Below are positions 10,169 to 43,294 of a DNA stretch of 64,000 nt, piece after piece. The position numbers and the translations under genes were made by a program. Each line of letters opens with the position of its first letter. Positions within the stretch are counted from its first letter, which is position 1. Location of the stretch: the sequence record PQ464595.1, one strand, 5' to 3'. Under the pieces are notes generated by a model that saw nothing but the letters and a program-made list of their open reading frames with translations, was not told the DNA's origin and ran no database searches.

Positions 10169-10229
10169 TAGAATCTATTTTCTGTTTTTTCGATAAAAGT
10201 GAATAGAGTGTGGTTGCTGTTAGATTCTA
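10169..10229 (-). ncRNA. CAGCAA module E1 (free hairpin)
   Basis: TAGAATCTA-ACAGCAA-(variable)-AAACAGAAAA-TAGATTCTA. Confidence 0.75.
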
Positions 10230-10235
10230 AAATTG

Positions 10236-10562
10236 TTATTTGGTCTTAAGTTCTGCTACTACAGCAGCAACTAAGTCCGGTGTAAAATCAATGCCGAAAA
10301 CTTCGGAATAATGTTTTACTGTACCTTCATAACCATGACGCTTGTCATTCAAGCGGTAACGCAATTCAAGAATCGCATTGTCAAAGTTAAACCAAGGATT
10401 GTTTTGACTCGCATGTAAGCGACCCCAATCAGTCAATGGTACGAAACCTTCATCAGCAGACTTACCCCGAAGAATATTATAGATAATATGCTCGTGTACA
10501 GTGTGCTCTTTCTCAAGTTTCCAGGTTGTTGTTACAGTAATGAATTGTTCTTTGGTCAACAT
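10236..10562 (-). CDS. hypothetical protein
   Basis: 108-aa ORF with SD. Confidence 0.7.
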   Translation of the reverse strand: MLTKEQFITVTTTWKLEKEHTVHEHIIYNILRGKSADEGFVPLTDWGRLHASQNNPWFNFDNAILELRYRLNDKRHGYEGTVKHYSEVFGIDFTPDLVAAVVAELKTK

Positions 10563-10682
10563 AGTATGTTCCTTTTGGATAGTAATTAATTTAGTGTTTT
10601 GTTCTGAATTAACTTTATCCGGTGGACCAGTACTGAATTTCTATAGCATCATAGGATTTACCTTTTTGTTTGTTTACTTAAT

Positions 10683-10758
10683 TAGAGCGAGTAATCGGAT
10701 TCGAACCGATGTGACCGACTTGGAAGGACAGCATATTAAGCCTCTATATGATACTCGC
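10683..10758 (-). tRNA. tRNA-Gly(TCC)
   Basis: Cloverleaf, loop CTTCCAA, U73; 3' CTA. Confidence 0.9.
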
Positions 10759-10761
10759 AGG

Positions 10762-10895
10762 TTGTACTGCCGCTCTCAGTACTGTACATACTTGTTCTTT
10801 ACGAACTGACCTGTACAGGTGCTACGCGGTTCCCGTCATATAATTTTACAAGCTGGGGGAATCATACAAGCTTGTTTCACACAGGAAGTGAATGA
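10762..10895 (-). ncRNA. candidate pseudoknotted RNA between tRNA-Gln and tRNA-Gly
   Basis: Hairpins TTCAC/GTGAA, ACAAGCT/AGCTTGT (loop TTCCC can pair with downstream GGGAA), TGTAC/GTACA, GTACTG/CAGTAC. Confidence 0.5.
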
Positions 10896-10906
10896 AATCT
10901 TTAAAT

Positions 10907-10982
10907 TAGCAGGCCCACAAGGACTCGAACCCTGAACGCGAGAATCAAAATCTCGTGTGTTAACCAATTACACCATGAGCCT
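10907..10982 (-). tRNA. tRNA-Gln(TTG)
   Basis: Cloverleaf, loop TTTTGAT, G73; 3' CTA. Confidence 0.92.
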
Positions 10983-10986
10983 AATC

Positions 10987-11030
10987 AAGAATCTATATAT
11001 TATTAACCGTGTTAATGCAGAAAGATTCTT
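10987..11030 (-). ncRNA. CAGCAA module E2 (minimal variant, CTGCAT)
   Basis: AAGAATCT-TTCTGCA-TTAAC ACG GTTAA-TAATATAT-AGATTCTT. Confidence 0.55.
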
Positions 11031-11079
11031 TGTTCTGTTCAGAATTTTTATTCATATCAAACCTGCCTGAACATCACTT

Positions 11080-11155
11080 TGCGGTCGTGCTTGGACTCGA
11101 ACCAAGATAAAAGAGTTAACAGCTCTCCGTAATTAAACCTTTATACGACACAACC
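11080..11155 (-). tRNA. tRNA-Asn(GTT)
   Basis: Cloverleaf, loop CTGTTAA, G73. Confidence 0.92.
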
Positions 11156-11174
11156 TTTTGTTTTTCTTACTTAT

Positions 11175-11203
11175 ATTATACCACATTATTTTGTGGCGTT
11201 TCA
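11175..11203 (-). promoter_or_regulatory. TGAAACG-class promoter
   Basis: TGAAACG-N16-TATAAT. Confidence 0.75.
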
Positions 11204-11212
11204 TCTTTTTTC

Positions 11213-11713
11213 TTAATTTTCTAAATTAAGTTCTTCATGAATTTCTCGATGACAGTTAGCACAGACTAACATACATTTATCTAATTCACTTTGAATCAGT
11301 TCCCATGAACGAGTAATACCTTCATCTGAAATACCAAAATCTTTTTGATTTGGGTCTTTATGATGGAAGTCTAACGCAGCTATTGATTTGTCATAACCAC
11401 ATCGTTCACATTTACCGCCAAGATATTCAACGGCTTTTATCTTTAATCGTTTACGATGTTCTGTAACTCCTTCAGAATTACATTTCATACATACACGCTT
11501 ACCGTCGGTTCTTTGTGAAAATTCAACATTGTGTTTTAAACATATTGAAGACTCACGTTGAATCATTATATGAGTTTTTAAACTCAAATCTTTGAAATAC
11601 TTCTTCATTGTAGTTGCTGATACATTACAAGTATTAGCAATCTGTTGAATAGTACTTCCACGTGAAATCATTTCCTGAACTACACGATTATCAATTTCAA
11701 GTTTTCTGCTCAT
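11213..11713 (-). CDS. HNH endonuclease (probable free-standing homing endonuclease) with N-terminal HTH
   Basis: CERCGY...LDFHH..P...C..VCANCHREIH motif. Confidence 0.9.
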   Translation of the reverse strand: MSRKLEIDNRVVQEMISRGSTIQQIANTCNVSATTMKKYFKDLSLKTHIMIQRESSICLKHNVEFSQRTDGKRVCMKCNSEGVTEHRKRLKIKAVEYLGGKCERCGYDKSIAALDFHHKDPNQKDFGISDEGITRSWELIQSELDKCMLVCANCHREIHEELNLEN

Positions 11714-11730
11714 AATTCACTTAAAAATAC

Positions 11731-11792
11731 TGGAATCCATTTTGATTTTTCAATTAACAGTTGATTTCATTTATGGTTGCTGCTGGATTCCA
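11731..11792 (-). ncRNA. CAGCAA module E3 (free hairpin)
   Basis: TGGAATCC-AGCAGCAACC...AAAAATCAAAAT-GGATTCCA. Confidence 0.75.
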
Positions 11793-11816
11793 AATCCGGT
11801 TTTGTTCAATTAAAGC

Positions 11817-11871
11817 TAGAATCTATTTTTGTTTTCTATATCCGAGAAGTTTTAATTGCTGGTAGATTCTA
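11817..11871 (-). ncRNA. CAGCAA module E4 (free hairpin)
   Basis: TAGAATCTA-CCAGCAA...AAAACAAAAA-TAGATTCTA. Confidence 0.75.
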
Positions 11872-11879
11872 AATGAGTA

Positions 11880-11987
11880 CAAATTGAGTTTACAGAAGTC
11901 CTTCCAAGGGACTAATACGTATTCTATTCTGACCTTAATAGGATAACATGCTATCCGTGTCACACCATAGTACGCCTGGTGAATTTG
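11880..11987 (-). ncRNA. candidate multi-way-junction RNA
   Basis: Closing CAAATT/AATTTG with hairpins CACCA/TGGTG, GGATA/TATCC, CTATT/AATAG, AGTCC/GGACT. Confidence 0.5.
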
Positions 11988-11995
11988 ATTAATAC

Positions 11996-12110
11996 TGGAA
12001 TTTATTTCGTTTTAGGCGGCTGCTCTCCCAACTGAGCTACAGTACTAGTACTGACAGGACTCGAACCTGCGACATGCTGCGTGATAGAAGTTAGTTGCTG
12101 TTAAATTCCA
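11996..12110 (-). ncRNA. CAGCAA module E5 carrying a circularly permuted tRNA domain
   Basis: Order: stem, ACAGCAA, anticodon 3' half, T arm (GCAGG TTCGAGT CCTGT), closed acceptor CAGTACT-AGTACTG, D arm (GCTC AGTTGGGA GAGC), stem. Confidence 0.8.
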
Positions 12111-12392
12111 AATTTTGTTTTAAAGATACGGATTATAGTTCGGATCACTAAAAATATTGTACTCTTTATGTTTACCATCCACAATAGTGTAGAAAGTAAA
12201 GTTCACAGAGTTATATGATTTACGGTCATTTTCTAAGTATATTGAAGTACTAGAACCGCCGATATTCACACGACTCACAACATAATAATGATCAGAATCT
12301 AACGCTAATGCGTTTATTCTATCACTTTCGTAACCAGCTTTAAGCTCAGTTACTTTAGCATATAAAATATCCATATCTTTCCTAATTAATAC

Positions 12393-12529
12393 AAGAATTC
12401 ATCGTTTATTGGATAGCCGTGTCTACCTATTTCACCATCACTATTCAGTACTGACATAGTTCGTAGGACTCGAACCTACACGCCATAAGGCCGCTATTTG
12501 GGTTAACATTTAGTTGCTGTTGAATTCTT
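12393..12529 (-). ncRNA. CAGCAA module E6 carrying a circularly permuted class-II (Leu-like) tRNA domain
   Basis: Variable arm, T arm GTAGG TTCGAGT CCTAC, acceptor closed by a TCAGTACTGA hairpin, D arm GTG AAATAGGTAGA CAC, GCTAT/ATAGC stem. Confidence 0.78.
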
Positions 12530-12541
12530 TAATTTACTACT

Positions 12542-12617
12542 TAGTGGGAATAGCTGGACTCGAACCAGCGGCGACTCGATTATCGGTCGAGCATTCTACC
12601 AACTGAATTATATTCCC
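12542..12617 (-). tRNA. tRNA-Ile(GAT)
   Basis: Cloverleaf; loop CCGATAA (C33 instead of U33); 3' CTA. Confidence 0.88.
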
Positions 12618-12870
12618 ATTTAATGCCTGTTACCAGGCATAATCACCAGTGCCGATGTAACATGCTTTGTTACAATGACCACTCATTGCGTCAAGTACAT
12701 CGTTCAGTTCTTCAAAGCGAGGATCTTTTTCATCCATTTCAAAGAACACATAAGTCAGTGCTTGGTACAAATCAATGTTATTTGGACGTTCGTTTGCGTC
12801 AACAAACTTACGAACCGCTTCGTGCATATTAGCACTATTCAGAATTTCATCTACGATGGTTTCCATAATA

Positions 12871-13329
12871 TCACCTAAAAGGATATGGTACAATGTTATG
12901 ATGTTCCCTAAGAAATTCTATGCTATGATTAACTTTCATCATATCTTCAAAGTACTTAACGAACTCGCGTAACCGTGTTACAAATTCGTAACTGAACGGA
13001 ACTTCTTTTAACGTACTTAACTGGAAGTGCCATTCCTCACTTATACTGTAAGGAAAACCATTGACTTTTAATATATCTTTATCGTCTTTATCCCAATAAT
13101 GTACGTTGAACCTGTTTGATAACAAGTCAACTACTATTGAAAGGGTGTTATCCTTTTCGTCCGACAAATAAAAATGAATTATCCCATCTCGTGAAGAATA
13201 ATGATCATTGTCATTAAAAACCACAGTATTAGATAATCCATCAATATTCGATCTACATCGTTCCGGTACATGTAATAACGAAAGGAAATATTCTTCTCCA
13301 ATTTCGTACAACACATTGTATTTGCTCAT
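12871..13329 (-). CDS. hypothetical protein, EEWxFQxST paralog family
   Basis: ISEEWHFQLSTL motif. Confidence 0.7.
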   Translation of the reverse strand: MSKYNVLYEIGEEYFLSLLHVPERCRSNIDGLSNTVVFNDNDHYSSRDGIIHFYLSDEKDNTLSIVVDLLSNRFNVHYWDKDDKDILKVNGFPYSISEEWHFQLSTLKEVPFSYEFVTRLREFVKYFEDMMKVNHSIEFLREHHNIVPYPFR

Positions 13330-13560
13330 TTAGAATGAATCCGGTTTTGCTACGCTCCGTACTGCCGACATGAAACCTTTTTGGAGGTCAGTCTTGGCAA
13401 TCGCCAGCCAACGTTTATCAATATCAGGATGATCTTCAAGTGCTTCGATCATATCTCCGACTTTAGCAGCTAAGTCCTTAATTGCGTTCATTGCATTAAT
13501 TTCTTGCTGATTAAGATCTCGATACCCTTTAATTTGTTTGTGTTGATTATCCATAATCAT
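13330..13560 (-). CDS. acb2: anti-CBASS cyclic-oligonucleotide sponge Acb2
   Basis: MDNQHKQIKGYRDL...RWLAIAKTDLQKGFM.AVR.VAKPDSF closely follows the Acb2 sequence as recalled. Confidence 0.92.
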   Translation of the reverse strand: MIMDNQHKQIKGYRDLNQQEINAMNAIKDLAAKVGDMIEALEDHPDIDKRWLAIAKTDLQKGFMSAVRSVAKPDSF

Positions 13561-13578
13561 TATCTCTCAATTAAATGC

Positions 13579-13636
13579 TGGAATCCACAAGGTCAAAGTA
13601 AAAGTTTGATTTTTGTGTGGTTGCTGGAGGATTCCA
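13579..13636 (-). ncRNA. CAGCAA module E7 (free hairpin)
   Basis: TGGAATCC-TCCAGCAACCACAC...GGATTCCA. Confidence 0.75.
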
Positions 13637-13878
13637 AATTCTTTATTCTACGTAGCCAATAAAGCCAACGTGTTCTTTAACAGTACTTTTCTTCTTAGTT
13701 TCTTCGTCATGAACTTCACGTTCAAAAACTACTGGTTCCAAAAGAACAACTGCTTTTTGTGCTCCGAAGATATTGCTAACTTGCTCGTCATTCAATTCTT
13801 CAGCACTAGTATGACGACGCAAAGCACCATCTACTTTGTAGTAGTAATCGTAAAACATTTTTTTCTTCCTTGTGTGAT

Positions 13879-13975
13879 TGGCGGTAAAGAGAGGATTTGA
13901 ACCTCCGAGGCTAGGGATTACCTAACCTGGCCGCTTTCCAGGCGACTGCATTAAGCCAAGCTCTGCCACTTTACC
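13879..13975 (-). tRNA. tRNA-Ser(GGA)
   Basis: Class II cloverleaf, loop CTGGAAA, G73, CCA. Confidence 0.95.
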
Positions 13976-14152
13976 TTTTAATATATTCCAAGTATTTATC
14001 ATTTAATACTTTATGTCTATAGCCACCCTTCTTTCTCAAGGACTTGATATAAAAGGTAGCTTTAGGATCTAATCCTTTGCTAATAAGATAATCTTTTTCA
14101 AATTCATCTTGTAGTTTAGACATGTATGACTCACTTGAGTAAATTAAAAAGC

Positions 14153-14212
14153 TAGAATCTATAATCTTTGTTTTCACCAATTGAATAAGAGTATGTTTGC
14201 TGTTAGATTCTA
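14153..14212 (-). ncRNA. CAGCAA module E8 (free hairpin)
   Basis: TAGAATCTA-ACAGCAA-ACATAC...AAAACAAAGATTA-TAGATTCTA. Confidence 0.75.
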
Positions 14213-14336
14213 TGCGAGAAAGGTTGGACTCGAACCAACGACCAGGCCATTAAAAGTGGATGAAGTATGGTTGCTGAGAAATTACATTACAGTAATTTTT
14301 GGGTTCTACCTGCTCTACCAACTGAGCTACTTTCTC
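14213..14336 (-). tRNA. tRNA-Lys(TTT) interrupted by a 49-nt CAGCAA insert (14260-14308) in the anticodon stem
   Basis: Deleting the insert gives the perfect arm GGCCA-CTTTTAA-TGGCC; acceptor, D and T arms are intact. Confidence 0.75.
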
Positions 14337-14344
14337 ATAAATTT

Positions 14345-14448
14345 TGGGGCAAGGAATGGAGTTGAACCATTTCCAGGATCAGTGGCATCTCCAGTGTTTT
14401 ATCACTCAGAAGACAATGCCCATTGGGTAATTAAGTTCCTCAAGCCTC
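14345..14448 (-). ncRNA. tRNA-like RNA: T arm plus acceptor-like stem and a long hairpin in place of the anticodon arm
   Basis: AATGG TTCAACT CCATT; GGCA/TGCC, TCTTC/GGAGA, AGTG ATAAAA CACT. Confidence 0.5.
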
Positions 14449-14524
14449 TACTAAGTTATAGTTCCCTATAGATGAATATAACGTTCGCTTTCTGCGGCCT
14501 CTAATGTGCCTATCCTTAATTACT

Positions 14525-14617
14525 TGGAGGAAGATGTGGGATTCGAACCCACGGAGGGCTATTAACCCCCGCCTGATTTCAAGTCAGGTACAATAAGCCA
14601 AACTCTGCCAATCTTCC
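14525..14617 (-). tRNA. tRNA-Ser(TGA)
   Basis: Class II cloverleaf, loop CTTGAAA, CCA; discriminator U. Confidence 0.93.
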
Positions 14618-14647
14618 AAAAAAGTACTTCACAGTACTTTGTACGCT

Positions 14648-14802
14648 GGATTCTCATTAATTGAGCAACTATCTAGCACGGCTCAATATAACTAATTACT
14701 ATCTCCCTAGTTACCAGGTGGACACGAAGGGAGTTTTACGTCCGAGTATCCAATCTCATTTATGATTGATTTTTAAGATTTTATGTGTTGCTGTCAGAAT
14801 CC
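14648..14802 (-). ncRNA. CAGCAA module E10 with a ~135-nt structured payload
   Basis: GGATTCT-GACAGCAA...AGAATCC; inner CTCCCT/AGGGAG, GGAC/GTCC (pseudoknot), ATTGAGC/GCTCAAT. Confidence 0.65.
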
Positions 14803-14831
14803 GAGTGCTAATTCGGTTTTAATTAAAAGAC

Positions 14832-14937
14832 AAGAATCGTTGTTTTCTGTCCCCACAACCAGTGGTAAATCGGAATTGAACCGAAGGTGTTTTTCGCCAA
14901 ATGAAATATAAAGAGTTATGTTTGCTGGACGATTCTT
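14832..14937 (-). ncRNA. CAGCAA module E11 with T arm and closed acceptor-like hairpin
   Basis: AAGAATCGT-CCAGCAA...TCGG TTCAATT CCGA...CCAC/GTGG...AAAACA-ACGATTCTT. Confidence 0.7.
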
Positions 14938-14938
14938 T

Positions 14939-15012
14939 TAGCGTTCCCAACGGGGTTCGAACCCGTGTTGCCTGAGTGAAAGTCAGGTATCCTACCGCTA
15001 GATGATGGGAAC
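14939..15012 (-). tRNA. tRNA-Glu(TTC)
   Basis: Cloverleaf, loop CTTTCAC, G73; 3' CTA. Confidence 0.95.
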
Positions 15013-15195
15013 AATTTTTATTCAGATTCTTTCAATGACCATTCTGTACTTTTATCGGTACTTTTGGTTACTTCAAAACCTAATTCGGACATTACTTCAG
15101 GAAGGTTATTGTTATCAATACCACTAAGGATATGACGAACGATTACCATGTTTTCTTCAGATGATGCCATTTTACTATCCTTTGTTGAAGGAACT

Positions 15196-15311
15196 GAAAT
15201 CTTTGTTTTTCTGGCCCCAAGCACAGCCTACATAGCAACGTGGCTGCTGCGGATTCGAACCGCACCGTTTTTTTCGCATAAAAAATATTGTTTTGTTTGC
15301 TGTAAGATTTC
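15196..15311 (-). ncRNA. CAGCAA module E12 with T arm, closed acceptor and mini D arm
   Basis: GAAATCTT-ACAGCAA...TGCGG TTCGAAT CCGCA-GCAGCC/GGCTGT-GC TTGGG GC-AAAAACA-AAGATTTC. Confidence 0.72.
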
Positions 15312-15328
15312 GTGTTGCTAATACTTTT

Positions 15329-15357
15329 ATTATACCACAAATATTTGATTCGTTTCA
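15329..15357 (-). promoter_or_regulatory. TGAAACG-class promoter
   Basis: TGAAACG-N16-TATAAT, directly upstream of E12. Confidence 0.75.
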
Positions 15358-15378
15358 AATATTTCTTAATTAAATTCA

Positions 15379-15500
15379 GGAATCTCGTTTTATCCAGCAC
15401 CAAGCTCCCACTATTTGAATAAGGCAGATGTTCGTGGGTGGGGAATTGAACCCCGTCGTTTTGTTTTCATCAAAAGGTTTAATTTTTGCTGTAAGATTCC
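15379..15500 (-). ncRNA. CAGCAA module E13 with T arm, closed acceptor and mini D arm
   Basis: GGAATCT-TACAGCAA...GGGG TTCAATT CCCC-CCCAC/GTGGG-AGC TTGGT GCT-AAAACG-AGATTCC. Confidence 0.72.
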
Positions 15501-15517
15501 GCTGCCTTATGTACTAC

Positions 15518-15546
15518 ATTATACCAGATTTTTTTGAGTCGTTTCA
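15518..15546 (-). promoter_or_regulatory. TGAAACG-class promoter
   Basis: TGAAACG-N16-TATAAT, directly upstream of E13. Confidence 0.75.
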
Positions 15547-15572
15547 AATTTTTCTGTATAATTTTCAGAAAC

Positions 15573-16259
15573 TTAATCACTTACATAAGTTTCTAATTTG
15601 TTCCTGAACTGTACACCATCTTGGCTGTACTGTTGTGTTAATTTCGGGTTTTGCGTGTTGTTCACATCGTTGATCATGATTGGTACAAAGGACACACGAA
15701 TGAACGTGCGTACCTGACCAGTACTAACCACAGGACGACGATGAAGAATGTACGGGTCTAAACAGTACACGACATTCTCTTTACAACGTTTTACTTCAGA
15801 CGTGATGTTCTGTTCCAGGAAATGGTTCACGTTATGTTTCAGTGGGTCAAAATCATCAGGAAACTTCACAGAAACATTGGTGTATTCTGTCGGAATACGA
15901 TTAGTCCAAATGTAGTTCTGTTCAGGAACGTGAGCGACCTTAGTACTGAAACCGTCAACATGCCATTCGTCATCAGTTACAGATTTAACAACACCGTGTC
16001 GTACAGTAATGTAGCAGTACTGCTTGTCACCGTCAACAGCATTTTTCTGATGATTAAGCGACTCTATCAATACTGGAGATAACCAACGGAGTTCATCTGG
16101 TATTAACAGATTCTCACCGTCAGCACATACACACATACGCAGAATGTATTGTTCATCGAAAGGACATACTACATCAACTTTCGATAACTCAATTGGTTCA
16201 ACATTGTTTTCAAATTCACTTACAGAAACATTACGCTTTGCTCGTTCAATGATACCCAT
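15573..16259 (-). CDS. putative 2OG-Fe(II) oxygenase-like protein
   Basis: WHVDG (HxD) ... ILHRRP (H) ... RTFIRVSF (R) spacing typical of the double-stranded beta-helix fold. Confidence 0.55.
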   Translation of the reverse strand: MGIIERAKRNVSVSEFENNVEPIELSKVDVVCPFDEQYILRMCVCADGENLLIPDELRWLSPVLIESLNHQKNAVDGDKQYCYITVRHGVVKSVTDDEWHVDGFSTKVAHVPEQNYIWTNRIPTEYTNVSVKFPDDFDPLKHNVNHFLEQNITSEVKRCKENVVYCLDPYILHRRPVVSTGQVRTFIRVSFVPIMINDVNNTQNPKLTQQYSQDGVQFRNKLETYVSD

Positions 16260-16295
16260 GATGTACCTCTCATTTAAAATAGGGCATTGCTGCCC

Positions 16296-16772
16296 TTAGT
16301 CCAGAACCACTTCTTCATCTGAGCTACGTTTAGTAGCCTGTTTCGGTGCGTCAGGAGATACCTGATTACCGGAAGTGCTGTCCAGTGATTTCTCAAGCTT
16401 GATAATACGCTTGAAGGTTTTAATGTCAGGTTTGTTACAAGCCCAATCTTTGCTATCATTCGCACCATAACGGTACAGATTGCCATAAGAGTAGTACTTG
16501 TTACCAACCCAAATTACACCTGCTCGTTGACCAGTTTCCTTATCGGTGAAGATAAGTTCCTTAGTTTCCCGGCGTACAGTCAGAAGACCAGCTTCGTACT
16601 TATCCATCAGAAGGTTCAACTTGATAGTTGCTTCTTCATTATAAGACAAAGATGACATTAAGAACTGAGCGGTTTTAAGACGTTCAGTACCCATAGATGA
16701 TGTAACAACCAACATCCACAGAATGAACAGTACTAAAGCTCCCAGCAAACCATACAATGCTATAGCAGCCAT
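16296..16772 (-). CDS. membrane-anchored hypothetical protein
   Basis: N-terminal TM helix. Confidence 0.7.
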   Translation of the reverse strand: MAAIALYGLLGALVLFILWMLVVTSSMGTERLKTAQFLMSSLSYNEEATIKLNLLMDKYEAGLLTVRRETKELIFTDKETGQRAGVIWVGNKYYSYGNLYRYGANDSKDWACNKPDIKTFKRIIKLEKSLDSTSGNQVSPDAPKQATKRSSDEEVVLD

Positions 16773-17396: not shown

Positions 17397-17425
17397 ATAG
17401 TACCGGAATCGTTAAGCCCTGTCAA
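17397..17425 (-). promoter_or_regulatory. sigma70-like promoter
   Basis: TTGACA-N17-TACTAT. Confidence 0.7.
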
Positions 17426-17443
17426 GGACTTTTTTTGAACTTT

Positions 17444-17944: not shown

Positions 17945-17967
17945 TGGATTACCCTTTTAGCTCAATT

Positions 17968-17990: not shown

Positions 17991-18006
17991 GTTACGTATT
18001 ATGGTA

Positions 18007-22285: not shown

Positions 22286-22404
22286 TGCGGTGAGTACAGG
22301 AATCGAACCTGTGACTTCGGCGTGAAAGGCAATTGTTTGATTGCTGTTAGATTCAGTACTGGAATCCATTTTTTTACGCTATTTTACCACTAAACTAACT
22401 CACC
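22286..22404 (-). tRNA. tRNA-Glu(TTC) interrupted by a 46-nt CAGCAA insert (22331-22376) at 29/30
   Basis: Deleting the insert gives GCGGC-CTTTCAC-GCCGA; acceptor GGTGAGT/ACTCACC, G73. Confidence 0.75.
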
Positions 22405-23627: not shown

Positions 23628-23707
23628 TAGTGCGAGGGGATGGACTTGAACCACCGACACGGAGTTACCCTAAGATAATCTTGCTCTACCATCTGAGCTA
23701 CCCTCGC
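23628..23707 (-). tRNA. tRNA-like gene with aberrant anticodon arm (anticodon not assignable)
   Basis: Perfect acceptor GCGAGGG/CCCTCGC, D and T arms; anticodon/variable region about 5 nt too long with irregular pairing (AGATTATCTTAGGGTAACTCCG). Confidence 0.6.
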
Positions 23708-24244: not shown

Positions 24245-24359
24245 TGTGGAGAGGGGTGGATTCGAACCACCGTACCGTTCTTATGAATGAAATTTATGGA
24301 TGCCGTAAGATTCCATCTGGAATCGCTTTTCGTGTCCTGGGCCGCTAGACGACCTCTCC
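24245..24359 (-). tRNA. tRNA-CAT-like gene interrupted by a 39-nt CAGCAA-family insert (24292-24330; core CGGCAT)
   Basis: Deleting the insert gives CGTTC-ATTCATAA-GAACG (8-nt loop); the insert has a GATTCC AGAT GGAATC stem. Confidence 0.6.
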
Positions 24360-30607: not shown

Positions 30608-30718
30608 GGTGCTAAGAACAGGATTCGAACCTGTAAGGAAACCTCGCGGTACTTCCCACGTCCTATTGTCGCTTTCGCTATCGTCAGACGCTACGTTTAC
30701 CAATTCCGTCATCTCAGC
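30608..30718 (-). ncRNA. class-II tRNA scaffold with a 24-nt expanded anticodon loop
   Basis: GCTGAGA/TCTTAGC, Leu-like D arm, GCGTC/GACGT stem, loop contains GC-GAAA-GC, long variable hairpin, T arm. Confidence 0.7.
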
Positions 30719-30855
30719 GTGGCGGGGATATTCCGCACCCTACCATGCGTTGGAAGCCAAAGGGTGTTATCGGCTATATGCCCCATAATATGGTCGCCAA
30801 TATAAGGTAGTTTCATCTACGCACGACCCGACAGGTACTCGCCCTGTAACGCCGC
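30719..30855 (-). ncRNA. candidate pseudoknotted RNA between the suppressor tRNA and the tRNA scaffold
   Basis: CAGG/CCTG, GGTCG/CGACC, GTAG/CTAC, AGCC/GGCT with loop CACCCT pairing to downstream AGGGTG, GCGG/CCGC. Confidence 0.55.
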
Positions 30856-30881
30856 TTCGAATAAGCCTTTATACTAGCATT

Positions 30882-30956
30882 TGTGGCTCATACCAGATTC
30901 GAACTGGTGTGGACAGAGATTTAGAGTCTCCCGCTACGCCTCTCAGCTAATGAGCC
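30882..30956 (-). tRNA. amber suppressor tRNA (anticodon CTA)
   Basis: Cloverleaf GGCTCAT/ATGAGCC, arm GGAGA-CTCTAAA-TCTCT, A73. Confidence 0.9.
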
Positions 30957-35904: not shown

Positions 35905-36220
35905 TTGAATATCTCCATTAAGTCATTTACAATGGCTTCAATTTCTTCAGGAGTCTTGCGTTTAACATTAGGATCACGATATTTGAGCCTGAAGTTAGAA
36001 AACGCACGTTTACCTAAGTAACCAACACGCCACGTGAATACCACGTTCAGTACTAGATCTTTATGTTGCTGTACTGGAAAGTTAGTAATAGGGAATTCAA
36101 TTACATCAACGAATTCATGATGTTTAGCATCGTATAAACGAGCCTGGATTTCACCATCATCACGAATTTCATCAATCACCCCGTACCAGTCAGCATGAAT
36201 AGTTACTTTCTGTTTCATGG

Positions 36221-36796: not shown

Positions 36797-36916
36797 TAAT
36801 AGTGCCTCACGGTTAGAACTTGATTTTGGTTTAGAGTTCCGATAACACCAGTACTTGAAATGTAATGGTATTGTACCATGTTATTCAGTACTTCTTTTCG
36901 CACAACATTCAGTACT

Positions 36917-37801
36917 TCACGAGTCTGACTGTTTAGATAGGTTAACATCGAATATCTCTCTTAATAGATGTTCAATTACTGGTACTGTCCAACCATTACC
37001 AAGCATTTTGTATGCTTGTGTGTTAGAGGACACTTTAAAGAAGTCATCAGGAACTCCCTGAAGACGACAACATTCTACCACGCTGAGCTTCCTGTAGTCA
37101 ACCCCATTTTTGCCATTTTCAATCAAAAATGCCTTTGAGATATTTGGATTAGAAAACACAAGCTGTCTACGGGATTTGTTAAAGTACTGATTACAATCAC
37201 CACCTTTGAAATAGTTCGCATCTATACAATAAGATTTCGATCTATCTGTATGTCCTGATTCTAAGATAGTACTTAAATCTGGAGATAACATTAATGCTGG
37301 TGGTACAATGTAGTTGTCAGTACTAACCCAATAGTAACGTTGTCTAAAATGGGCAGTATAATGTTGAGAGTTAATTAGATGTGGTGTTCTTCCAATAATA
37401 CCAGAACAGTATTCTTCGAAGTCCTTCTTCATCTTAACATTCTCGAACAAGTACTTCACATCTGGATTAACACTCTTGATGTGATTAAAAATATCAACCA
37501 TCGTATGGAATAGCATTCCACGAGGATCAGTTGTTCCACCTTGCTTACCAGCTACAGACCAAGCCTGGCAGGGGAATCCACCCATCAGTAAGTCTATTGA
37601 ACTCCAGTCAATATCCCATTCTTCCCATTTCGTAACATCGCCCAATTGAACAATGTCGGGGAAGTTCTCTTGACTTTCCGCAATTGCGTACTTATCAATC
37701 TCTGACGAGTAATATGTTTGTACTGGTACACCAGCATTCTGTAATGCCATGTACCCACAAGACATGCCGTTGAATAACGACAGTACTGTAATTGGTTCCA
37801 T
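36917..37801 (-). CDS. DNA (cytosine-5)-methyltransferase
   Basis: Motif I LSLFNG, motif IV GGFPCQ, motif VI ENV, motif X GNGW. Confidence 0.93.
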   Translation of the reverse strand: MEPITVLSLFNGMSCGYMALQNAGVPVQTYYSSEIDKYAIAESQENFPDIVQLGDVTKWEEWDIDWSSIDLLMGGFPCQAWSVAGKQGGTTDPRGMLFHTMVDIFNHIKSVNPDVKYLFENVKMKKDFEEYCSGIIGRTPHLINSQHYTAHFRQRYYWVSTDNYIVPPALMLSPDLSTILESGHTDRSKSYCIDANYFKGGDCNQYFNKSRRQLVFSNPNISKAFLIENGKNGVDYRKLSVVECCRLQGVPDDFFKVSSNTQAYKMLGNGWTVPVIEHLLREIFDVNLSKQSDS

Positions 37802-39139
37802 AGAAATCCTTTTCTATTAGATTATTCTTCGTTTTGTTCATCCATGTAAGCATCGTCGGGATCAATACCACCGTACCGTGCTTCGTACTCTTTAGCAACT
37901 ACTGATTCAGCACCAGGATTATGAGTACTGCGATCCAGAAGATTATATACTGAGGTTTTACCTTCCAGTACAAAATTAACGGATTCCAACATACGCTCAA
38001 GTTCAGCTTTCAGTTCGAGAATAGCTTCTCGTTCAGTTTCACCAGTTCCCATTGGTGCGATTTCACTAGTACTACCAACAGCATTAGGTTCATAATAAAC
38101 CTCAATGATACTGGCACTGAATTCAGTGTAATCATCCATTTCAGTTTTGGTTACTTCTACACGATTATTCCACATATTTGTACCTTATTTAAAGACAGTG
38201 AATTCATGCTGGTCTTCTGGCAGTTCATCAATAGTGATAACCTTCAAAAGACCACGTTTCATGTAAAGATTGAAAACGGGAAAGTAGTTCCCGAAAATTG
38301 TTTCCGGTTCAACATGAATTTCAGTGACAACGACTTGTTCTTCACCTTTACACAAACGTTTGAATAGCTGACGATGTATTTCAAGGGTTTTAAATTCATC
38401 AGTATCCAGTACTCGGCGTTTACGAACTACTTTAGTCATTTGAATCTCACATCTTACGAATTTGAATTGTGCTATAGAATAGCAGAGTATTACCGTTGCT
38501 GTCAACCTGTTTTACAGGGTTTTCGAACACTACGAGTGTTTTAGGCTCGTAGCTGGTAATCATGAATGTACGACCGTTACGGGTACTTACTAGAAAGACA
38601 GGTTTGTTCATTAGTATACATCGTCTGGATGCCCGTAAATCATAATGAGTTTACCAGCAGGGTTATACTCGCGAGTCACTACACCTTTACGGTCAGTACC
38701 ACGAGTCCATTTAATCATACTAACTTTAGTACCGTCAGCACAAGTGTAGAAAGTGTTATTCTCTGGATCAGTACTAGCAGTACATTGTTCATTCTTGACT
38801 TTAGCAAGAAGACTGATGTACTTAGGCTCGTTCTGACGAATAGGATCATGTAATGCTTTCTGTTCTTCTTCGTACTTCAGTTGTGGCTTAACCTGATAGA
38901 TGTACAAATTCAAACAAGTAAACAGAATCCAAAACACGAGAAAGCAATTAAGATTGGTGTTACTCATAGATTGTTTCATTTACTTTTCTCCAGAAATAAA
39001 AAAAGCTGCGTTAAGCAGCTTGAATTCTTAACACGACCATTATTACATAATAAGGGCTGTGTGTCAAGGAAAATGTGAAAGGCGTGTAAATTAGGATTTA
39101 ACCTAAAGGACTCCAAAAATAAAAGGACACTATTAAAAA

Positions 39140-39224
39140 TGGTGGGGATGGTCGGACTCGAACCGACACGGATTGCTCCGCCAGAACCTAAATCTGGTGC
39201 GTCTACCAATTTCGCCACATCCCC
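39140..39224 (-). tRNA. tRNA-Leu(TAG)
   Basis: Class II cloverleaf, loop TTTAGGT, CCA. Confidence 0.95.
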
Positions 39225-39243
39225 GTTCTGTTTATTTATCTAT

Positions 39244-39272
39244 ATTATAGCACAAAAAAGCGTTCCGTTTCA
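39244..39272 (-). promoter_or_regulatory. TGAAACG-class promoter
   Basis: TGAAACG-N16-TATAAT. Confidence 0.75.
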
Positions 39273-39275
39273 TCT

Positions 39276-39644
39276 TTATGCTAAAATATTTAAAATATTT
39301 TTCACCATCTGAATATGATCAAAGCTTATCAGTGGATCAATAGTACTTAACTGGAAATGCCATTCTTCTGAAATATCCAAATTATGAGTGACGATAATAC
39401 CGCCAATCATGTACTCTATGTTTTTATTTATGAAATCAACATCCAGTACTGGTTTATCATCTACCAGAAAACGATGTAAATCTTTATTTTTATTTGATGC
39501 TACCGTATGAATATAGGTAAACTCAGTTCCTTGATGGAAGTATGAATAAAGAGGGGTTTTCATCATCCCCTCTTTAACAGAGTCTGAGCATTCTAATACA
39601 CGTTCAATAACACTTTCAACTTCAAGTATATCCACTACCAGCAC
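39276..39644 (-). CDS. hypothetical protein, EEWxFQxST paralog family
   Basis: ISEEWHFQLSTI motif. Confidence 0.7.
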   Translation of the reverse strand: MLVVDILEVESVIERVLECSDSVKEGMMKTPLYSYFHQGTEFTYIHTVASNKNKDLHRFLVDDKPVLDVDFINKNIEYMIGGIIVTHNLDISEEWHFQLSTIDPLISFDHIQMVKNILNILA

Positions 39645-40063
39645 CGTAAACGTTTGACCGCCTTAATTTCATCCTTATTAGGATAGATGATTAACCCTGT
39701 TTGAGTTAAACCATCAAAGAAGTTAAAGCCGTAATCCTGAATGTCATGCACAAAGAAACCAGGATGATAATCGTGTGCGTCGATTTCTGCTTGTATCTTA
39801 GCTTTGACCGTATTCATATGGTCTTCATCTTTGATACGCAGAACAATCTTCCTGCGGCCTTCGGTCAACCAACCTTCAAAGTTTGCCACTGGCATGATCA
39901 GGTCTTCATTGTCCTCTGTACGACGACGCTCTTTGAACGTATTGTACTGACCCCATACCTGGTCTAAACCATGACCAACTTGTACTGCGAACTTACCTAA
40001 TGGCATGTTCAGGTCTTCACGAAGAAGAACATAGCACTTATACTGTAGTACTGGCTTTTCCAT
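39635..40063 (-). CDS. peptidyl-tRNA hydrolase, PTH2 family
   Basis: YVLLREDLNMPLGKFAVQVGHG...KIVLR...D.G...T.T.L.I.P. Confidence 0.88.
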   Translation of the reverse strand: MEKPVLQYKCYVLLREDLNMPLGKFAVQVGHGLDQVWGQYNTFKERRRTEDNEDLIMPVANFEGWLTEGRRKIVLRIKDEDHMNTVKAKIQAEIDAHDYHPGFFVHDIQDYGFNFFDGLTQTGLIIYPNKDEIKAVKRLRCW

Positions 40064-42051
40064 TTCTAATTCTCCGAGTAGCTTCTAAAATATTATCACA
40101 AAATTCAATGTGAGCGATTATAGCATCCATCGGGAGTTCCGTCAAGTCCTGTCGGGTCATTTCCATGAAATATCCTTCCTCAGTACAAATCTTCCTACAA
40201 CGGGTGAAGTTAATAATTCCATCCGGTGCTGAATGACTATAATGACCACTATAACGATTAGTATAATACATCGTTAGGGTATCATTCCGAGAATCATAAT
40301 TCATGTAAAACGTTCTACCCGTATGAGGCTTATAGATTACTTCTACAAGCCCTTCATCGTTACATTTAATCGTGTAGTTTTCAGAAACATGAGTAAATGT
40401 AAAATAACAATGATCAGCACGGTTGACAGTCTTATAGACAGTACTAGCTCGTTTTGCGACCCTGCCTAATATGTCGCTTATTGGGTTGGCTTTCCAACTC
40501 ATTCAAAATTCCTTCTAAGTAGTCAGAACCTTCTGAGTAATCATTACGTTCCAACCATTCTTTAAGGAATTTTACCGCAAAACTTTGATCTTCTGTAGAC
40601 ATAATCCGATTCCGTACAACACGCACAAAAAAGCGTACATAGTCCAGATAATCAGATGAAACAGAACCTTTTTCTTCACAAAATTCGATACACGACTGAA
40701 CATAATGCCTCGTTAGATCCATAGTTCGTTCAACTTCACTCGAACGTTCCCATGCGTTAATCCACACTTTATAACGTTCGAACCCCGCTTTAAAGATATA
40801 TTCCTCTGGTACGTAACCAGACCATACATCATTGATATAAACGCAGTACTCACTAACTGACGGATGCCAATGTACGTATGTAGTACTCCACATAACCTCT
40901 GGAAATTCATCAGCAAGATAATCAATGAAATCTTCATTCAGATTAGGATCTTTTCGTTCAAATTTATATCCACGTTGCCAGTTAGCGTTGTCTGTCATTT
41001 TATCAGGTCATCCATAAAAGAGCAATCATCTTTTTTCGGTGTTTCAACGATGACGATACCACCGTTATAATCTGGATGTTCTTCATTCCAGTATTCTTCT
41101 AACCAATCTTCATCTTCATAGCAGTTATGAACATCAAATTCAATATCAATGCCACGATCTGCCAGAATCTTATTAACTTGACTAAGAACGTATTCAGCAC
41201 TATCCCATACAGAACGTGCGTAATCCATTTCTTCATCAGTTACATTAAATGTTACCTTAGTACTCATTTAGTTTCACCTTTGTAATCTTCTTCTTCGTGC
41301 CATGAACAGCCGACTTCACAATCACCATCTACTAGTGACCATTGAATGCCATGAAGAATATTACCCTGTAATACATATGATTCACCCCAAGCTTCTTCTG
41401 AGCCAATATTAAGGCTTTCAATGAAACGCTCGAACGCAATTTCTAGATCAACCTGATCACCTTCAGGTAATGTCAAACAAATAGTTTTATTCATTTTCAT
41501 CCGTTGGATAGTTATAGAACCCGTAGCCACTAACTTCTTCATACAGTTGTCGCATAATACGACGATTTGCTTCTTGGCGGCGTTGATGTTCTTCAGTGGT
41601 TTCTAATTCAAATTTTCCATCACGCACAATCATACCACGTAAACCGTGACCATGATCATAACGCATACACATACTTTCAATCAAACGAGCATCTGGCTCT
41701 TTTGGTAAATTTGGTTTCATTACTTGTCCTTTATTCCGTTAAGTACTTCCATGAACTTCTCTACATCAGTACTTTCAAAGAATAAATGTTCCCATTGAGT
41801 CATTTTCTGAAAGTGCCAAGCTTCATCAGCAAGACGAGAGAAGTTAGGATATTTATAACGGCGTTTTGAACCCATCCAATCTTCAACTACAAGAAAGTCA
41901 CTACCAGGAAAATAACGAAAATTCCAGCACTTGTTGTACAAGAATGTTAAATCAATTTCAATCATCTGAACACCATCTTCTTTCTTACAGCGTTCAGTTA
42001 ATTCATATGCCAAGTTTTCTGAGCATTCGAAGTACTGTTCAATGAAATTCA

Positions 42052-42873
42052 TCATAAGGACAACATAGCCTCAACGATTGATGGAATATCACATTCGTAG
42101 AATCCAGCACAATTGATATTATTAACTTCCAGTACTTTATACCCTTCAGACGTTTCAGCAAAATCCATTACAAAGGCATCTGCTGGAACCCATTTTTTAC
42201 ATAGTTCTTCAGCTTTATCAACTATATACTTAGGTGCAGTTTGTGCAAGACGAACTTCACCATGTAATTTATAAAGTGACCAAGCTACGACTTCACCTTT
42301 TACAATAAAGAGACGATATTCAGAAATAATATCTTTACATGAAGAAACCATTATTTCAAAATCATCAGATACAGTTTCTTTAAATTGGTTAATAGCATAT
42401 TCAAAATTATCACGTTCAATAACAGTAGCTATCATCTTTTTAGTATCATGTACTGGACGAATAAAGACTTTATCAGTCCAGATAGGATTTAACCTTTCTG
42501 TAATATTGGATACAGTACCGAAAGATGCATCCCCATTAAGAAAATTAGGTCTTCCCCAATATGTAGTCATTTGTTCAAATATGTTGAAGTTTTCATTTAT
42601 AAATCCACCAGGAGTATAACCTTCTTCAACAAGTTGATTAGCTAATGCATAACTTCCAAATGACATAGTGGGTACTGATTTATCAAAGTACTTTTCATAT
42701 GAAGCATCAGTATAATCAGTAACATCTTCAGGAACAAATATATTCAAAAATGGAACTGGTTTAACTGAAGTGTGAGATATGTTATTCTGTACCATATATT
42801 CTTTCATGATACGAAAACCATCTTCATTGAAATACTTATCCATTATTAGAAAGTGCATGTATATCCTTAGCAA
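42052..42873 (-). CDS. ATP-grasp domain protein (DUF4343/R2K-like)
   Basis: VFIRP..D.K, EYR.F, FVMD, VLEVN.IN.AGFY. Confidence 0.85.
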   Translation of the reverse strand: MLRIYMHFLIMDKYFNEDGFRIMKEYMVQNNISHTSVKPVPFLNIFVPEDVTDYTDASYEKYFDKSVPTMSFGSYALANQLVEEGYTPGGFINENFNIFEQMTTYWGRPNFLNGDASFGTVSNITERLNPIWTDKVFIRPVHDTKKMIATVIERDNFEYAINQFKETVSDDFEIMVSSCKDIISEYRLFIVKGEVVAWSLYKLHGEVRLAQTAPKYIVDKAEELCKKWVPADAFVMDFAETSEGYKVLEVNNINCAGFYECDIPSIVEAMLSL

Positions 42874-43141
42874 TTAGCGTGAAAATAATCCAAGTACTCT
42901 CGTGGTATTTCAAAACCACCATCAACGAGCGTACCATGACGTTCAGAAGTTAGTTCAAGTACTAAAAATTCATCACCAACTTTGATACCATCACGTAACG
43001 CCCAGCCATATACTTCAAGAAATTCTGGATCAACTAATTTCAGTTTATCATATCCAGGTCGTAAATCAGACCATGTATAACACCATGTGAAGTTATTTGA
43101 TTCATTAACAGAATTAGAACTCATGTAGTACTCCAGAAATG

Positions 43142-43165
43142 AAAAAACCAGCAGGAAGCTGGTTT
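43142..43165 (-). terminator. intrinsic terminator
   Basis: AAACCAGC/GCTGGTTT hairpin plus U tract. Confidence 0.7.
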
Positions 43166-43172
43166 AGTTAAT

Positions 43173-43294
43173 TAGTCGGGAATTGTGGACTCGAACCACA
43201 TCTCACGGCTCCCTATGCAATTGTATTGGTTGCTGTGAAATTCCATTACAAGAATTTATGTTATACGGTGTGCTAACCCTTACACTAATTCCCG
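43173..43294 (-). tRNA. tRNA-Pro(AGG)-like gene interrupted by a 47-nt CAGCAA insert (43219-43265) at 29/30
   Basis: Deleting the insert gives CCGGC-ATAGGGA-GCCGT; C1-G72, A73 and G37 fit Pro identity. Confidence 0.7.

Follow-up and report, generated by a model that had tools for sequence, protein, structure and literature searches.

A repeated RNA module among the tRNA genes of phage Kaldavass

The 64,000-nucleotide (nt) stretch of DNA analysed here, called the window below, is 100% identical to bases 62001-126000 of PQ464595.1, the genome of Erwinia phage Kaldavass. This 366-kb Rak2-like jumbo phage has as relatives XbC2, GAP32 and CBB (genus Mimasvirus) and BF and fHe-Yen9-04 (genus Eneladusvirus). 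The minus strand of the window holds most genes and all 26-27 tRNA genes, and it is on this gene strand that we find 16 copies of a structured module built around the motif CAGCAA; their coordinates are given as window positions. A first-pass annotation of the sequence had counted at least 16 copies in three topologies. Reading of the strand, a stem-aware scan and a covariance model set the number at 16, with all three topologies present. CAGCAA alone occurs 67 times in the window for 29 expected, and the pattern GAATN{2,6}CAGCAA has 12 matches, all on the gene strand, for 0.84 expected. The homologous regions of XbC2 and CBB contain 11 and 13 such matches, respectively, where about 0.75 are expected.

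The module consists of a helix, P1, with the core GAAUC/GAUUC, joined to ACAGCAA on one strand and to a GAAAAC-type A-rich run on the other. The P1 consensus is UUAGAAUCUA / UAGAUUCUAG or UUGGAAUCC / GGAUUCCAG, and its base (U·G/A-U/G-C) is conserved. The 5' arm is followed by N-CAGCAA and a G-poor linker, and the A-rich run precedes the 3' arm. In 12 of the 16 copies, the ends of the element pair with each other to form P1, with a payload between them; in the other four, P1 is a hairpin capped by a loop, and an entire tRNA, closed through its anticodon stem, takes the place of the payload. Both forms share the strand order A-rich strand, GAUUC arm, GAAUC arm, N-CAGCAA, the far end of the helix being either open or capped by a loop, so that they are indeed related by circular permutation, as had been proposed. 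The copies fall into six with a short payload, five with a tRNA-elbow payload, one with a large payload and swapped arms, and four inside tRNA genes. A short payload is a 3-5-bp hairpin alone, and some of the 7-nt loops are identical to canonical anticodon loops (CUGUUAA, CUUUUAC). Over all payloads, canonical loops are present in part of the copies (CUGUUAA, CUUUUAC, CUUUUAA, CUUUCAC and CUGUAAA). The covariance model, R1, was trained on Rak2-like copies only and fails to span long payloads, hence the scores of only 15-19 bits for long-payload copies. The flanks are AU-rich and conserved, with AUUU on the 5' side and YWG-Y-UUUAAUU on the 3' side, which suggests that discrete P1-bounded RNAs are released. 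The copies and two associated promoters are listed below; most copies are denoted Y-like RNAs, on grounds presented further on.

10168-10230 (-), Y-like RNA, short payload, UUAGAAUCUA-A-CAGCAA ... AAAACAGAAAA-UAGAUUCUAG; R1 score 64.9 bits
10986-11031 (-), degenerate copy with a short payload, AAGAAUCU-UU-CUGCAU ... AGAUUCUU, next to tRNA-Gln on its upstream side; CAGCAA or CAGCAU in the XbC2 and GAP32 orthologues
11730-11793 (-), Y-like RNA, short payload, hairpin UCAA-CUGUUAA-UUGA with a loop like that of the tRNA-Asn anticodon; R1 score 70 bits
11816-11872 (-), Y-like RNA, short payload; from sequence reading, stem scan and covariance model
11995-12111 (-), YrlA-type Y-like RNA; Rfam YrlA 41.9 bits at 12019-12077
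12393-12529 (-), Y-like RNA with, as payload, a tRNA-like body that is permuted, of class II (long variable arm) and closed at the acceptor; from stem comparison
13578-13637 (-), Y-like RNA, short payload CAAA-CUUUUAC-UUUG (Lys-like loop); from stem scan and covariance model
14153-14212 (-), Y-like RNA, short payload, beginning 3 nt past the tRNA-Lys gene; from stem scan and covariance model
14215-14336 (-), tRNA-Lys(UUU) gene with a 49-nt module (14260-14308) between anticodon-stem nt 28 and 29, P1 loop-capped; Rfam tRNA 46.1 bits with a 64-nt insertion, orthologue alignment, ARAGORN after removal
14648-14804 (-), swapped-arm copy (GGAUUCU ... AGAAUCC), payload structured and about 130 nt long; XbC2, CBB and BF conserve it
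14832-14937 (-), Y-like RNA, T-arm/elbow payload, beginning 4 nt past the tRNA-Glu gene (14941-15012, ARAGORN); from orthologue comparison
15196-15311 (-), Y-like RNA, elbow payload, leader UAGCAAC complementary to the internal loop GUUGCUA; from sequence reading and stem scan
15329-15358 (-), sigma-70-type promoter TTGAAA-18-TATAAT with TG, for the 15311 RNA; 11/12 consensus matches
15379-15500 (-), Y-like RNA, elbow payload, leader AUAAGGCAG complementary to the internal loop CUGCCUUAU; from sequence reading and stem scan
15518-15547 (-), sigma-70-type promoter for the 15500 RNA; 11/12 consensus matches
22288-22404 (-), tRNA-Glu(UUC) gene, anticodon stem interrupted on its 5' strand by a 46-nt module (22331-22376); orthologue alignment, ARAGORN after removal
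24247-24359 (-), Glu-type tRNA body with a 39-nt module (24292-24330), ACGGCAU variant, anticodon loop of 8 nt (UCAU) without the insert; orthologue alignment, ARAGORN after removal
43173-43294 (-), tRNA gene with a 47-nt module (43219-43265), tRNA-Pro(AGG) by ARAGORN without the insert; from stem scan and ARAGORN

The copy at 11995-12111 reads, in order, P1, CAGCAA, the 3' strand of an anticodon stem, a T arm, a closed acceptor, a D arm, the 5' strand of the anticodon stem, AAAAC and P1. Its 7-bp acceptor is sealed on itself and its anticodon stem has 5 bp. In the orthologues the acceptor is capped by UUCG (GAP32) or by a longer insert (CBB), in keeping with the 'closed acceptor' of the first-pass annotation, and the anticodon stem covaries. 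The copy at 12393-12529 has the same arrangement on a class-II tRNA body. In the tRNA-embedded copy at 43173-43294, the part 3' of the module resembles a YrlA-like RNA of an Enterococcus phage.

The module is an RNA-level structure

The conservation of P1 is that of a base-paired RNA. In 18 short copies from four phages, 97.7% of the P1 cells are paired and three pairs are changed on both sides; in 12 copies from unrelated phages, 91% are paired and 7 of the 10 pairs are changed on both sides. In neither set did any of 500 shuffles reach the observed value, which bears out the compensatory stem changes noticed earlier. The closing U·G pair is invariant in the 12 model matches outside the Rak2 group. 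Orthologous copies provide examples of compensation: GAAUUUA/UAAAUUC is replaced by GAAUUCA/UGAAUUC, the P1 of 12393-12529 is GAAUUCA/UGAAUUC in Kaldavass and GAAUCUA/UAGAUUC in GAP32, and at 14832-14937 BF has AGGAUUCG/CGAAUCCU where Kaldavass has AAGAAUCG/CGAUUCUU. Several P1 pairs are G·U on the transcribed strand only. As these would be A·C mismatches on the other strand, they argue against a DNA-level element, the case that the first-pass annotation had named as contrary to its own proposal. Two copies (15500 and 15311) have strong promoters of their own, TTGAAA-18-TATAAT with an extended -10. The module is thus an RNA-level structure specific to the transcribed strand.

Linkage to Ro-like genes in other phages

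An exact 14-mer scan of IMG/VR gave mostly chance matches. Filtering for real modules led to contigs that are not Rak2-like, one of which is Enterococcus phage EfV12-phi1 (Herelleviridae). In this phage, four tandem RNAs of the form AAGAAnnn-NA-CAGCAA ... nnnUUCUU lie directly upstream of a gene for a 510-residue protein with DUF2828, DUF7788 and von Willebrand factor A (vWA) domains, annotated 'RNA-binding protein'. The upper part of their P1 covaries completely (GAACGCC, GAAGCA, GAAUCUA, GAACC), and three of the four have tRNA-like payloads. Related Enterococcus phage records label this region 'tmRNA', 'SsrA' or pseudo-tRNA. Searching with the EfV12-phi1 protein (tblastn) returned 712 phage records, among them 'Ro-like RNA binding proteins' of mycobacteriophages, gp57 of Listeria phage A511, FelixO1-like phages and all Rak2-like phages. 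Modules were found beside several of these genes: three upstream of gp57 in A511 (arms AGGAAUC, AGAGAGC and AGGAAGC), three just past the 'Ro-like RNA binding protein' gene in mycobacteriophage Kingsolomon (arms GGACAC, GGACCCC and GGACGG), the middle one being a YrlA-like RNA with 37.9 bits, and four among tRNAs past gp047 in the FelixO1-like phage wV8. The notion of a family restricted to Rak2-like phages is overturned by the Enterococcus, Listeria, mycobacteriophage and wV8 copies. The gaps concerned are unannotated and bear 3-4 tandem RNAs each, at positions 7470-8090 of our EfV12-phi1 locus (L133), 3760-4060 of the A511 locus (L134) and 3800-4080 of the Kingsolomon locus (L136).

We then took a census of 80 IMG/VR loci fetched by protein alignment alone, a module being defined as a stem with CAGCAA and an A-rich run. 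There were 137 modules on the gene strand, compared with 18 on the opposite strand and 13-28 in shuffles. At least one module is present in 61 of the 80 loci, and 61 modules lie less than 1 kb upstream of the Ro-like gene. In some loci the module is in the mRNA leader, about 30 nt ahead of the ribosome-binding site, a placement that would allow autoregulation. Applied to non-Rak2 loci, R1 gave 12 matches at E < 0.1, all on the strand of the Ro-like gene.

A phage protein with a predicted Ro60 fold

Kaldavass, GAP32, CBB, XbC2, BF and fHe-Yen9 all encode the Ro-like protein. The Kaldavass gene (PQ464595.1, 278662-280176) lies about 150 kb outside the window, and its product (XPP60324.1) is 83.7% identical to GAP32_176. 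An RNA ligase gene is found two small open reading frames (ORFs) upstream of it; in GAP32 and CBB the ligase gene is adjacent to the Ro-like gene or one gene off. Pfam recognises the domains DUF2828, DUF7788 and VWA_2. As no link to Ro60 was apparent at the sequence level, a comparison of folds was needed. An AlphaFold model built with 32 homologues had a predicted local distance difference test (pLDDT) score of 82.8 and a predicted template modelling (pTM) score of 0.79. The top six Foldseek matches in the PDB are all Ro60 structures, with E values from 7e-10 to 2e-7 over 520-575 columns, which is nearly the whole chain. They comprise Ro60 of Thermus phage phiLo, Xenopus Ro60 with and without RNA, Deinococcus Rsr and a Ro60/pre-5S complex (full-length Ro60/TROVE matches 9KOP, 2I91, 1YVP, 2NVO and 9NEP). 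Matches further down cover the vWA domain only. The model thus indicates that the phage DUF2828/vWA protein has a Ro60 fold, with a HEAT-repeat ring and a vWA domain.

The CBB orthologue, CBB_183 (KU574722.1, 102737-104251), was detected in virions by mass spectrometry with eight unique peptides (PMC5259590). Its annotation as 'structural protein' stems from this detection in purified virions. Its presence there raises the question of whether the protein is packaged, be it alone or together with its RNAs.

tRNA genes that carry the module

Alignment with orthologues places the insert of the interrupted tRNA genes in the 5' strand of the anticodon stem, mostly between positions 28 and 29. The last two nt upstream and the first three nt downstream of the insert pair with positions 39-43, yielding split anticodon stems such as GG+CCA / UGGCC in 14336, CG+AGC / GCUCG in the CBB and GAP32 orthologues of 22404, CG+UUC / GAACG in the 24359 family and CG+UGC / GCACG in the CBB orthologue of 14336. 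Cutting out 39-49 nt in silico gives cloverleaves of 71-75 nt with a 5-bp anticodon stem. For the trimmed Kaldavass genes, ARAGORN reports tRNA-Lys(UUU), tRNA-Glu(UUC), a tRNA with the 4-base anticodon UCAU and tRNA-Pro(AGG), and for the trimmed orthologues of relatives Lys, Glu and Tyr(GUA). A tRNA is called in seven of seven cases, two of them with 4-base or A34 anticodons. Outside the Rak2 group, tRNA-embedded copies were found in two metagenomic loci (L042 and L187), that of L187 about 650 nt past the Ro-like gene.

Y-RNA-like RNAs and the case for a Ro60-like partner

The conservation of Ro60 and Y RNAs extends from bacteria to humans. To our knowledge, the tRNA-like part of bacterial Y RNAs still has no established role, and the phage versions have received little study.

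The existence of the module, its RNA-level structure and its genomic linkage to Ro-like genes across phage families are direct observations. We consider it probable that the 16 elements are Y-RNA-like noncoding RNAs of the phage, the constant module being the predicted dock of the Ro60-like protein. In favour of a docking site is that the module adjoins Ro-like genes in unrelated phages. The census, the recovery of non-Rak2 copies by R1, the presence of the protein gene in the six Rak2-like genomes, the fold of the protein model and the likeness in architecture to published phage Yrl RNAs count in the same direction. The strong promoters ahead of two copies point to Y RNAs, as does the RNA ligase gene beside the Ro-like gene, which mirrors the bacterial rsr-yrlBA-rtcBA operon. 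So do the matches of tRNA-like members to the Rfam family YrlA (RF02553). The best score in the window is 41.9 bits, covering model positions 24-84 only, for a gathering score of 69, and sister RNAs beside Ro-like genes score 45.2 and 34.3 bits in EfV12-phi1. As to architecture, a terminal stem with an adjoining conserved motif is present, the motif being CAGCAA or, in one copy, ACGGCA, instead of the Ro-binding motifs GNCGAA or GGUCCGA. The order T arm, acceptor-like hairpin, D arm occurs in 11995-12111 and 12393-12529; three more copies have a T arm or elbow only, and six have none of this. The ACGGCA variant (24359 copy, P1 at 24324) looks like the YrlA consensus 'acggCgaAU', and Infernal left the two unaligned. 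The first-pass annotation had not recognised the module as a described class; on this evidence we place it with RNAs of the Y RNA/YrlA kind, by tRNA-like copies that match below threshold (41.9 bits in the window, 34.3-45.2 bits for the sister RNAs), no Rfam family being reached at gathering score for the module itself.

Several observations weigh against this interpretation. All YrlA scores are below the gathering score of 69. CAGCAA differs from the GNCGAA/CGAA motifs of bacterial and Thermus-phage Y RNAs, and Infernal left them unaligned. In Rak2-like phages, the RNAs are 150-185 kb away from the Ro-like gene, and a scan of the surroundings of this gene in Kaldavass and GAP32 revealed no module; the RNAs of this lineage have relocated to the tRNA cluster. 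The Ro-like protein has no match to Pfam TROVE, and with phmmer it matches no PDB chain at E <= 1, solved Ro60 structures included. Finally, removal of the inserts restores tRNAs, as expected of an intron.

Alternative explanations

This last point is at the heart of an alternative that is unlikely in our view and that we keep as a live minority explanation of the four tRNA genes, namely that the module is a protein-dependent intervening sequence, an intron cut from the anticodon stem whose exons are resealed by a phage RNA ligase, the open copies being permuted intron-exon genes or solo introns. Excision does restore a 5-bp stem and an ARAGORN-callable cloverleaf, in relatives as well; ARAGORN misses the four interrupted genes in their native form, and these phages have two RNA ligases (PMC5259590). 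Moreover, positions 27-28/42-43 and 29-31/39-41 covary between orthologues (GG+CCA/UGGCC versus CG+UGC/GCACG), yet such covariation and the restoration of the stem are equally expected of a stable three-way junction. P1 or CAGCAA is at a variable distance from the putative splice points (6-12 nt and 8-11 nt), and the insertion points vary as well (28|29, 29|30, 31|32). No bulge-helix-bulge (two 3-nt bulges and a 4-bp helix) and no conserved junction sequence were seen by eye at the junctions of nine insert-bearing tRNAs; lacking consistent exon-intron pairing and showing variable junction distances, splicing of this type was rejected. At gathering scores, Rfam finds only tRNAs in the window and no ribozyme or intron family, and the inserts measure only 39-49 nt. 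A relaxed search of 10000-16000 likewise returned no ribozyme or riboswitch family, only sub-threshold YrlA and a few chance-level matches. The single weak group II match (RF02001, 16.8 bits for a threshold of 32, E 4.7, 15520-15586) lies over a promoter and outside all modules. Pfam analysis of ten large ORFs of the window identified NAD-salvage, ATP-grasp and AAA proteins only, with no candidate endonuclease or other RNA-processing enzyme. Splicing would leave two of the products with anticodon loops of 8 nt. The permuted copies, with acceptors sealed by 0-4-nt loops and without an anticodon loop, cannot mature into tRNAs; true permuted tRNA genes were rejected on the grounds of the sealed acceptor (CUAG in Kaldavass, UUCG in GAP32) and of the module standing where an anticodon loop should be. 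The intron model also leaves the modules beside Ro-like genes unexplained where they are not in tRNAs. Of the earlier suggestion of a protein-binding tag or a processing/splicing signal, the tag fits, with the Ro60-like DUF2828/vWA protein as candidate partner; for splicing, there is neither a bulge-helix-bulge by eye nor a ribozyme family, even though the excised genes give standard tRNAs.

Two further explanations do without the Ro-like protein. The copies might punctuate the processing or stability of mixed tRNA/mRNA transcripts, as terminal hairpins with AU-rich RNase E sites or as weak terminators requiring no dedicated protein. Their positions between tRNAs and small ORFs, their conserved flanks and the terminator-like succession of P1 and a U-rich run would suit such a role. 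We nonetheless judge it improbable, since it accounts neither for the invariant unpaired CAGCAA, the tRNA-like payloads and the copies inside tRNAs, nor for the dedicated promoters and the tight linkage to Ro-like genes in other phages; the flanks may merely mark the ends of Y-like RNAs. Most improbable of all are DNA-level repeats, such as inverted repeats akin to miniature inverted-repeat transposable elements, or recombination or homing sites, spread by the HNH endonuclease encoded at 11213-11713 within the cluster of copies. The inverted-repeat ends and the many dispersed copies are reminiscent of such elements, but all copies are on the transcribed strand and contain the G·U pairs described above, and on these two grounds the idea was rejected. 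In addition, the arms differ wholly between phages and remain complementary, no target-site duplication was seen, and the loop-capped permuted form in tRNAs is unreachable by simple insertion of the open form. We also considered sponges for Hfq (A-R-N) or CsrA, which the A-rich strand and a GGA present in part of the arms might suggest; such sponges would account for neither CAGCAA nor the linkage to Ro-like genes.

Possible functions of the Y-like RNAs

Returning to Y-RNA-like RNAs docked on a Ro60-like protein, we propose that P1 and the internal loop formed by the (N)ACAGCAA and GAAAAC-type strands may constitute the docking site of the DUF2828 + DUF7788/vWA ring. The variable part ranges from a hairpin resembling an anticodon stem-loop, through a tRNA elbow whose acceptor is closed, to a complete tRNA, and would act as tether or effector, as is the case in bacterial YrlA and YrlB. 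If Ro60/Y RNA/PNPase particles are a guide, the Ro-like ring would be recruited or gated by the RNAs and thereby coupled to tRNA-binding or RNA decay/repair enzymes during infection. Judging from its relatives, the system would probably serve RNA quality control, surveillance or repair, or else counter-defence, possibly versus a tRNA-directed attack. According to the PhageMaP preprint, Bas63 gp130, a Ro60-like protein encoded just upstream of tRNA genes, counters the Ppl defence, and its authors surmised that some annotated tRNAs are Y RNAs. For the FelixO1-type homologue, counteraction of Ppl was reported from a knockout screen (PMC11482910). Given the presence of the CBB orthologue in virions, a particle might even be delivered along with the DNA.

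More tentatively, the interrupted tRNA genes, four in Kaldavass and those of L042 and L187, might be natural tRNA/Y-RNA chimeras, that is, RNase P-processable tRNAs with a putative dock for the Ro-like ring in the anticodon stem; we find this conceivable and somewhat doubtful. If so, bacterial viruses might here have their first protein-dependent tRNA introns, whose excision the Ro-like protein and the neighbouring RNA ligase would assist. Alternatively, the ring could be loaded onto RNAs shaped like tRNAs or anticodon loops (Lys, Glu, Asn and Tyr loops) in order to intercept or repair the damage inflicted by host tRNA-targeting defences. We retain the idea of anticodon-loop decoys within this chimera model only, because canonical loops are found in only some of the payloads.

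Other features of the window

Five short 'hypothetical protein' coding sequences of the deposited record (15479-15580, 15143-15403, 14193-14471, 14661-14911 and 11823-11963) overlap Y-like RNAs or their promoters on either strand and are probably not real genes. A stretch of about 190 nt of noncoding DNA between tRNA-Ser and the interrupted tRNA-Lys gene (14337-14524, minus strand) is missing from XbC2 and terminates in an orphan T arm (GGAAAUGGUUCAACUCCAUUCC). A weak YrlA match (14283-14395) extends from it into the 5' part of the tRNA-Lys gene, and a weak sX4 match (14509-14633), mostly over tRNA-Ser, touches its edge. Further away, about 400 nt of noncoding DNA (60500-60905, minus strand) lie downstream of a TG-TATAAT promoter-like site and contain a stem + CAGCAA arrangement at 60582-60788 (UCAGUAC-GAA-CAGCAA ... 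GUACUGA); nothing in Rfam matches the region, which folds with unexceptional energy (z = -0.58).

Some tRNA genes are unusual in other respects. The tRNA at 23630-23707 (minus strand) has an 8-nt anticodon loop with the 4-base anticodon UUAG according to ARAGORN, and the CBB orthologue of the 14336 tRNA also has an 8-nt loop after removal of the insert (AUAUGAAA). Along with the 24359 tRNA without its insert, they could be quadruplet-decoding or decaying tRNAs. An amber-suppressor-type tRNA with the anticodon CUA, labelled 'Pyl' by ARAGORN, is found at 30883-30956 (minus strand) and is kept in XbC2, GAP32, CBB and BF. The 109-nt 'tRNA-Arg' of the record (30610-30718, minus strand) is reported by neither ARAGORN nor Rfam and is devoid of the CAGCAA module; upstream of it, 30720-30870 (minus strand) is GC-rich, noncoding and structured in appearance. 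The window also encodes a set of proteins related to nicotinamide adenine dinucleotide (NAD), namely a PnuC-like nicotinamide mononucleotide transporter, a NadR-like cytidylyltransferase + AAA_28 protein and an ADP-ribosylglycohydrolase, as well as two R2K-clade ATP-grasp proteins, all identified with Pfam. The NAD-related and ATP-grasp genes are at 54161-56135, 58819-59748, 42052-42858 and 49632-50450, all on the minus strand.

Implications

The module is a simple signature of sequence and structure with no Rfam family at threshold. With it, Y-like RNAs can be recognised in phages whose hosts are Gram-positive, Gram-negative or mycobacterial, each time alongside a DUF2828 protein that is often annotated 'hypothetical' or 'structural'. 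Annotation of these genomes stands to gain from it, as 'tRNA-OTHER', 'pseudo-tRNA' and several small ORF calls overlap these RNAs. The payloads of a single jumbo phage, graded from a bare hairpin through an elbow to a full tRNA, form a natural series with which to address what a payload recruits. Given the Ppl counter-defence reported for the FelixO1-type homologue, the RNAs may be the missing half of an anti-defence particle.

Comparison with known systems

The closest known RNA is YrlA (RF02553; Chen et al. 2014, PMC4201824). In both cases the 5' and 3' ends pair as a terminal stem adjoined by a short conserved motif, the tRNA-mimic body has the order T arm, closed acceptor, D arm, and the RNA is encoded with a Ro60-type protein, with an RNA ligase nearby; in bacteria, these genes form the RNA-repair operon rsr-yrlBA-rtcBA (PMC4201824; PMC7790460). 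The motifs differ, GNCGAA in YrlA versus (N)ACAGCAA opposite GAAAAC in an internal loop in the phage module. Furthermore, unlike YrlA, most phage copies are without a tRNA-like body, and the 16 copies are in a tRNA cluster far from the protein gene. Phage homologues of Ro60 with Y-like RNAs have been described in 22 phages, mainly mycobacteriophages (Chen et al. 2014, PMC4201824), and in published phage Yrl RNAs the 5'-3' stem flanks an internal loop that holds the short conserved motif (PMC12135203; PMC4201824). A further likeness is to Salmonella YrlB and to Yrl1/Yrl2 of Thermus phage phiLo (PMC12135203), small Y-like RNAs in which no tRNA domain is present and the conserved motif is held in an internal loop bounded by a stem. 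The phiLo RNAs are encoded upstream of the phage Ro60 gene, as are those of the Enterococcus, Listeria and metagenomic loci described here. The sequence of the motif is different, however, and the partner belongs to Pfam DUF2828/DUF7788 rather than TROVE. Binding and recruitment of PNPase have been demonstrated for phiLo, whereas the CAGCAA family is known here from sequence.

Other parallels concern the interrupted tRNA genes. Archaeal and eukaryal tRNA introns also reside in the anticodon arm, and their exact removal restores the tRNA; here, in contrast, neither a bulge-helix-bulge nor a splicing endonuclease was seen. The permuted copies share with the permuted tRNA genes of Cyanidioschyzon a 3' half that comes ahead of the 5' half, but their acceptors are sealed and they lack an anticodon loop. 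We found neither the CAGCAA/GAAAAC module as a DUF2828-linked signature, nor its 16-copy expansion, nor complete tRNAs carrying it, in Rfam 15 or in the literature searched. The CAGCAA module and the four complete tRNAs that harbour it inside the anticodon stem therefore look new. The latter resemble engineered tRNA scaffolds, tRNAs left intact but for a foreign RNA module inserted in the anticodon arm, except that the phage graft is natural, is located at 28|29 and retains a small anticodon-like hairpin beside it.

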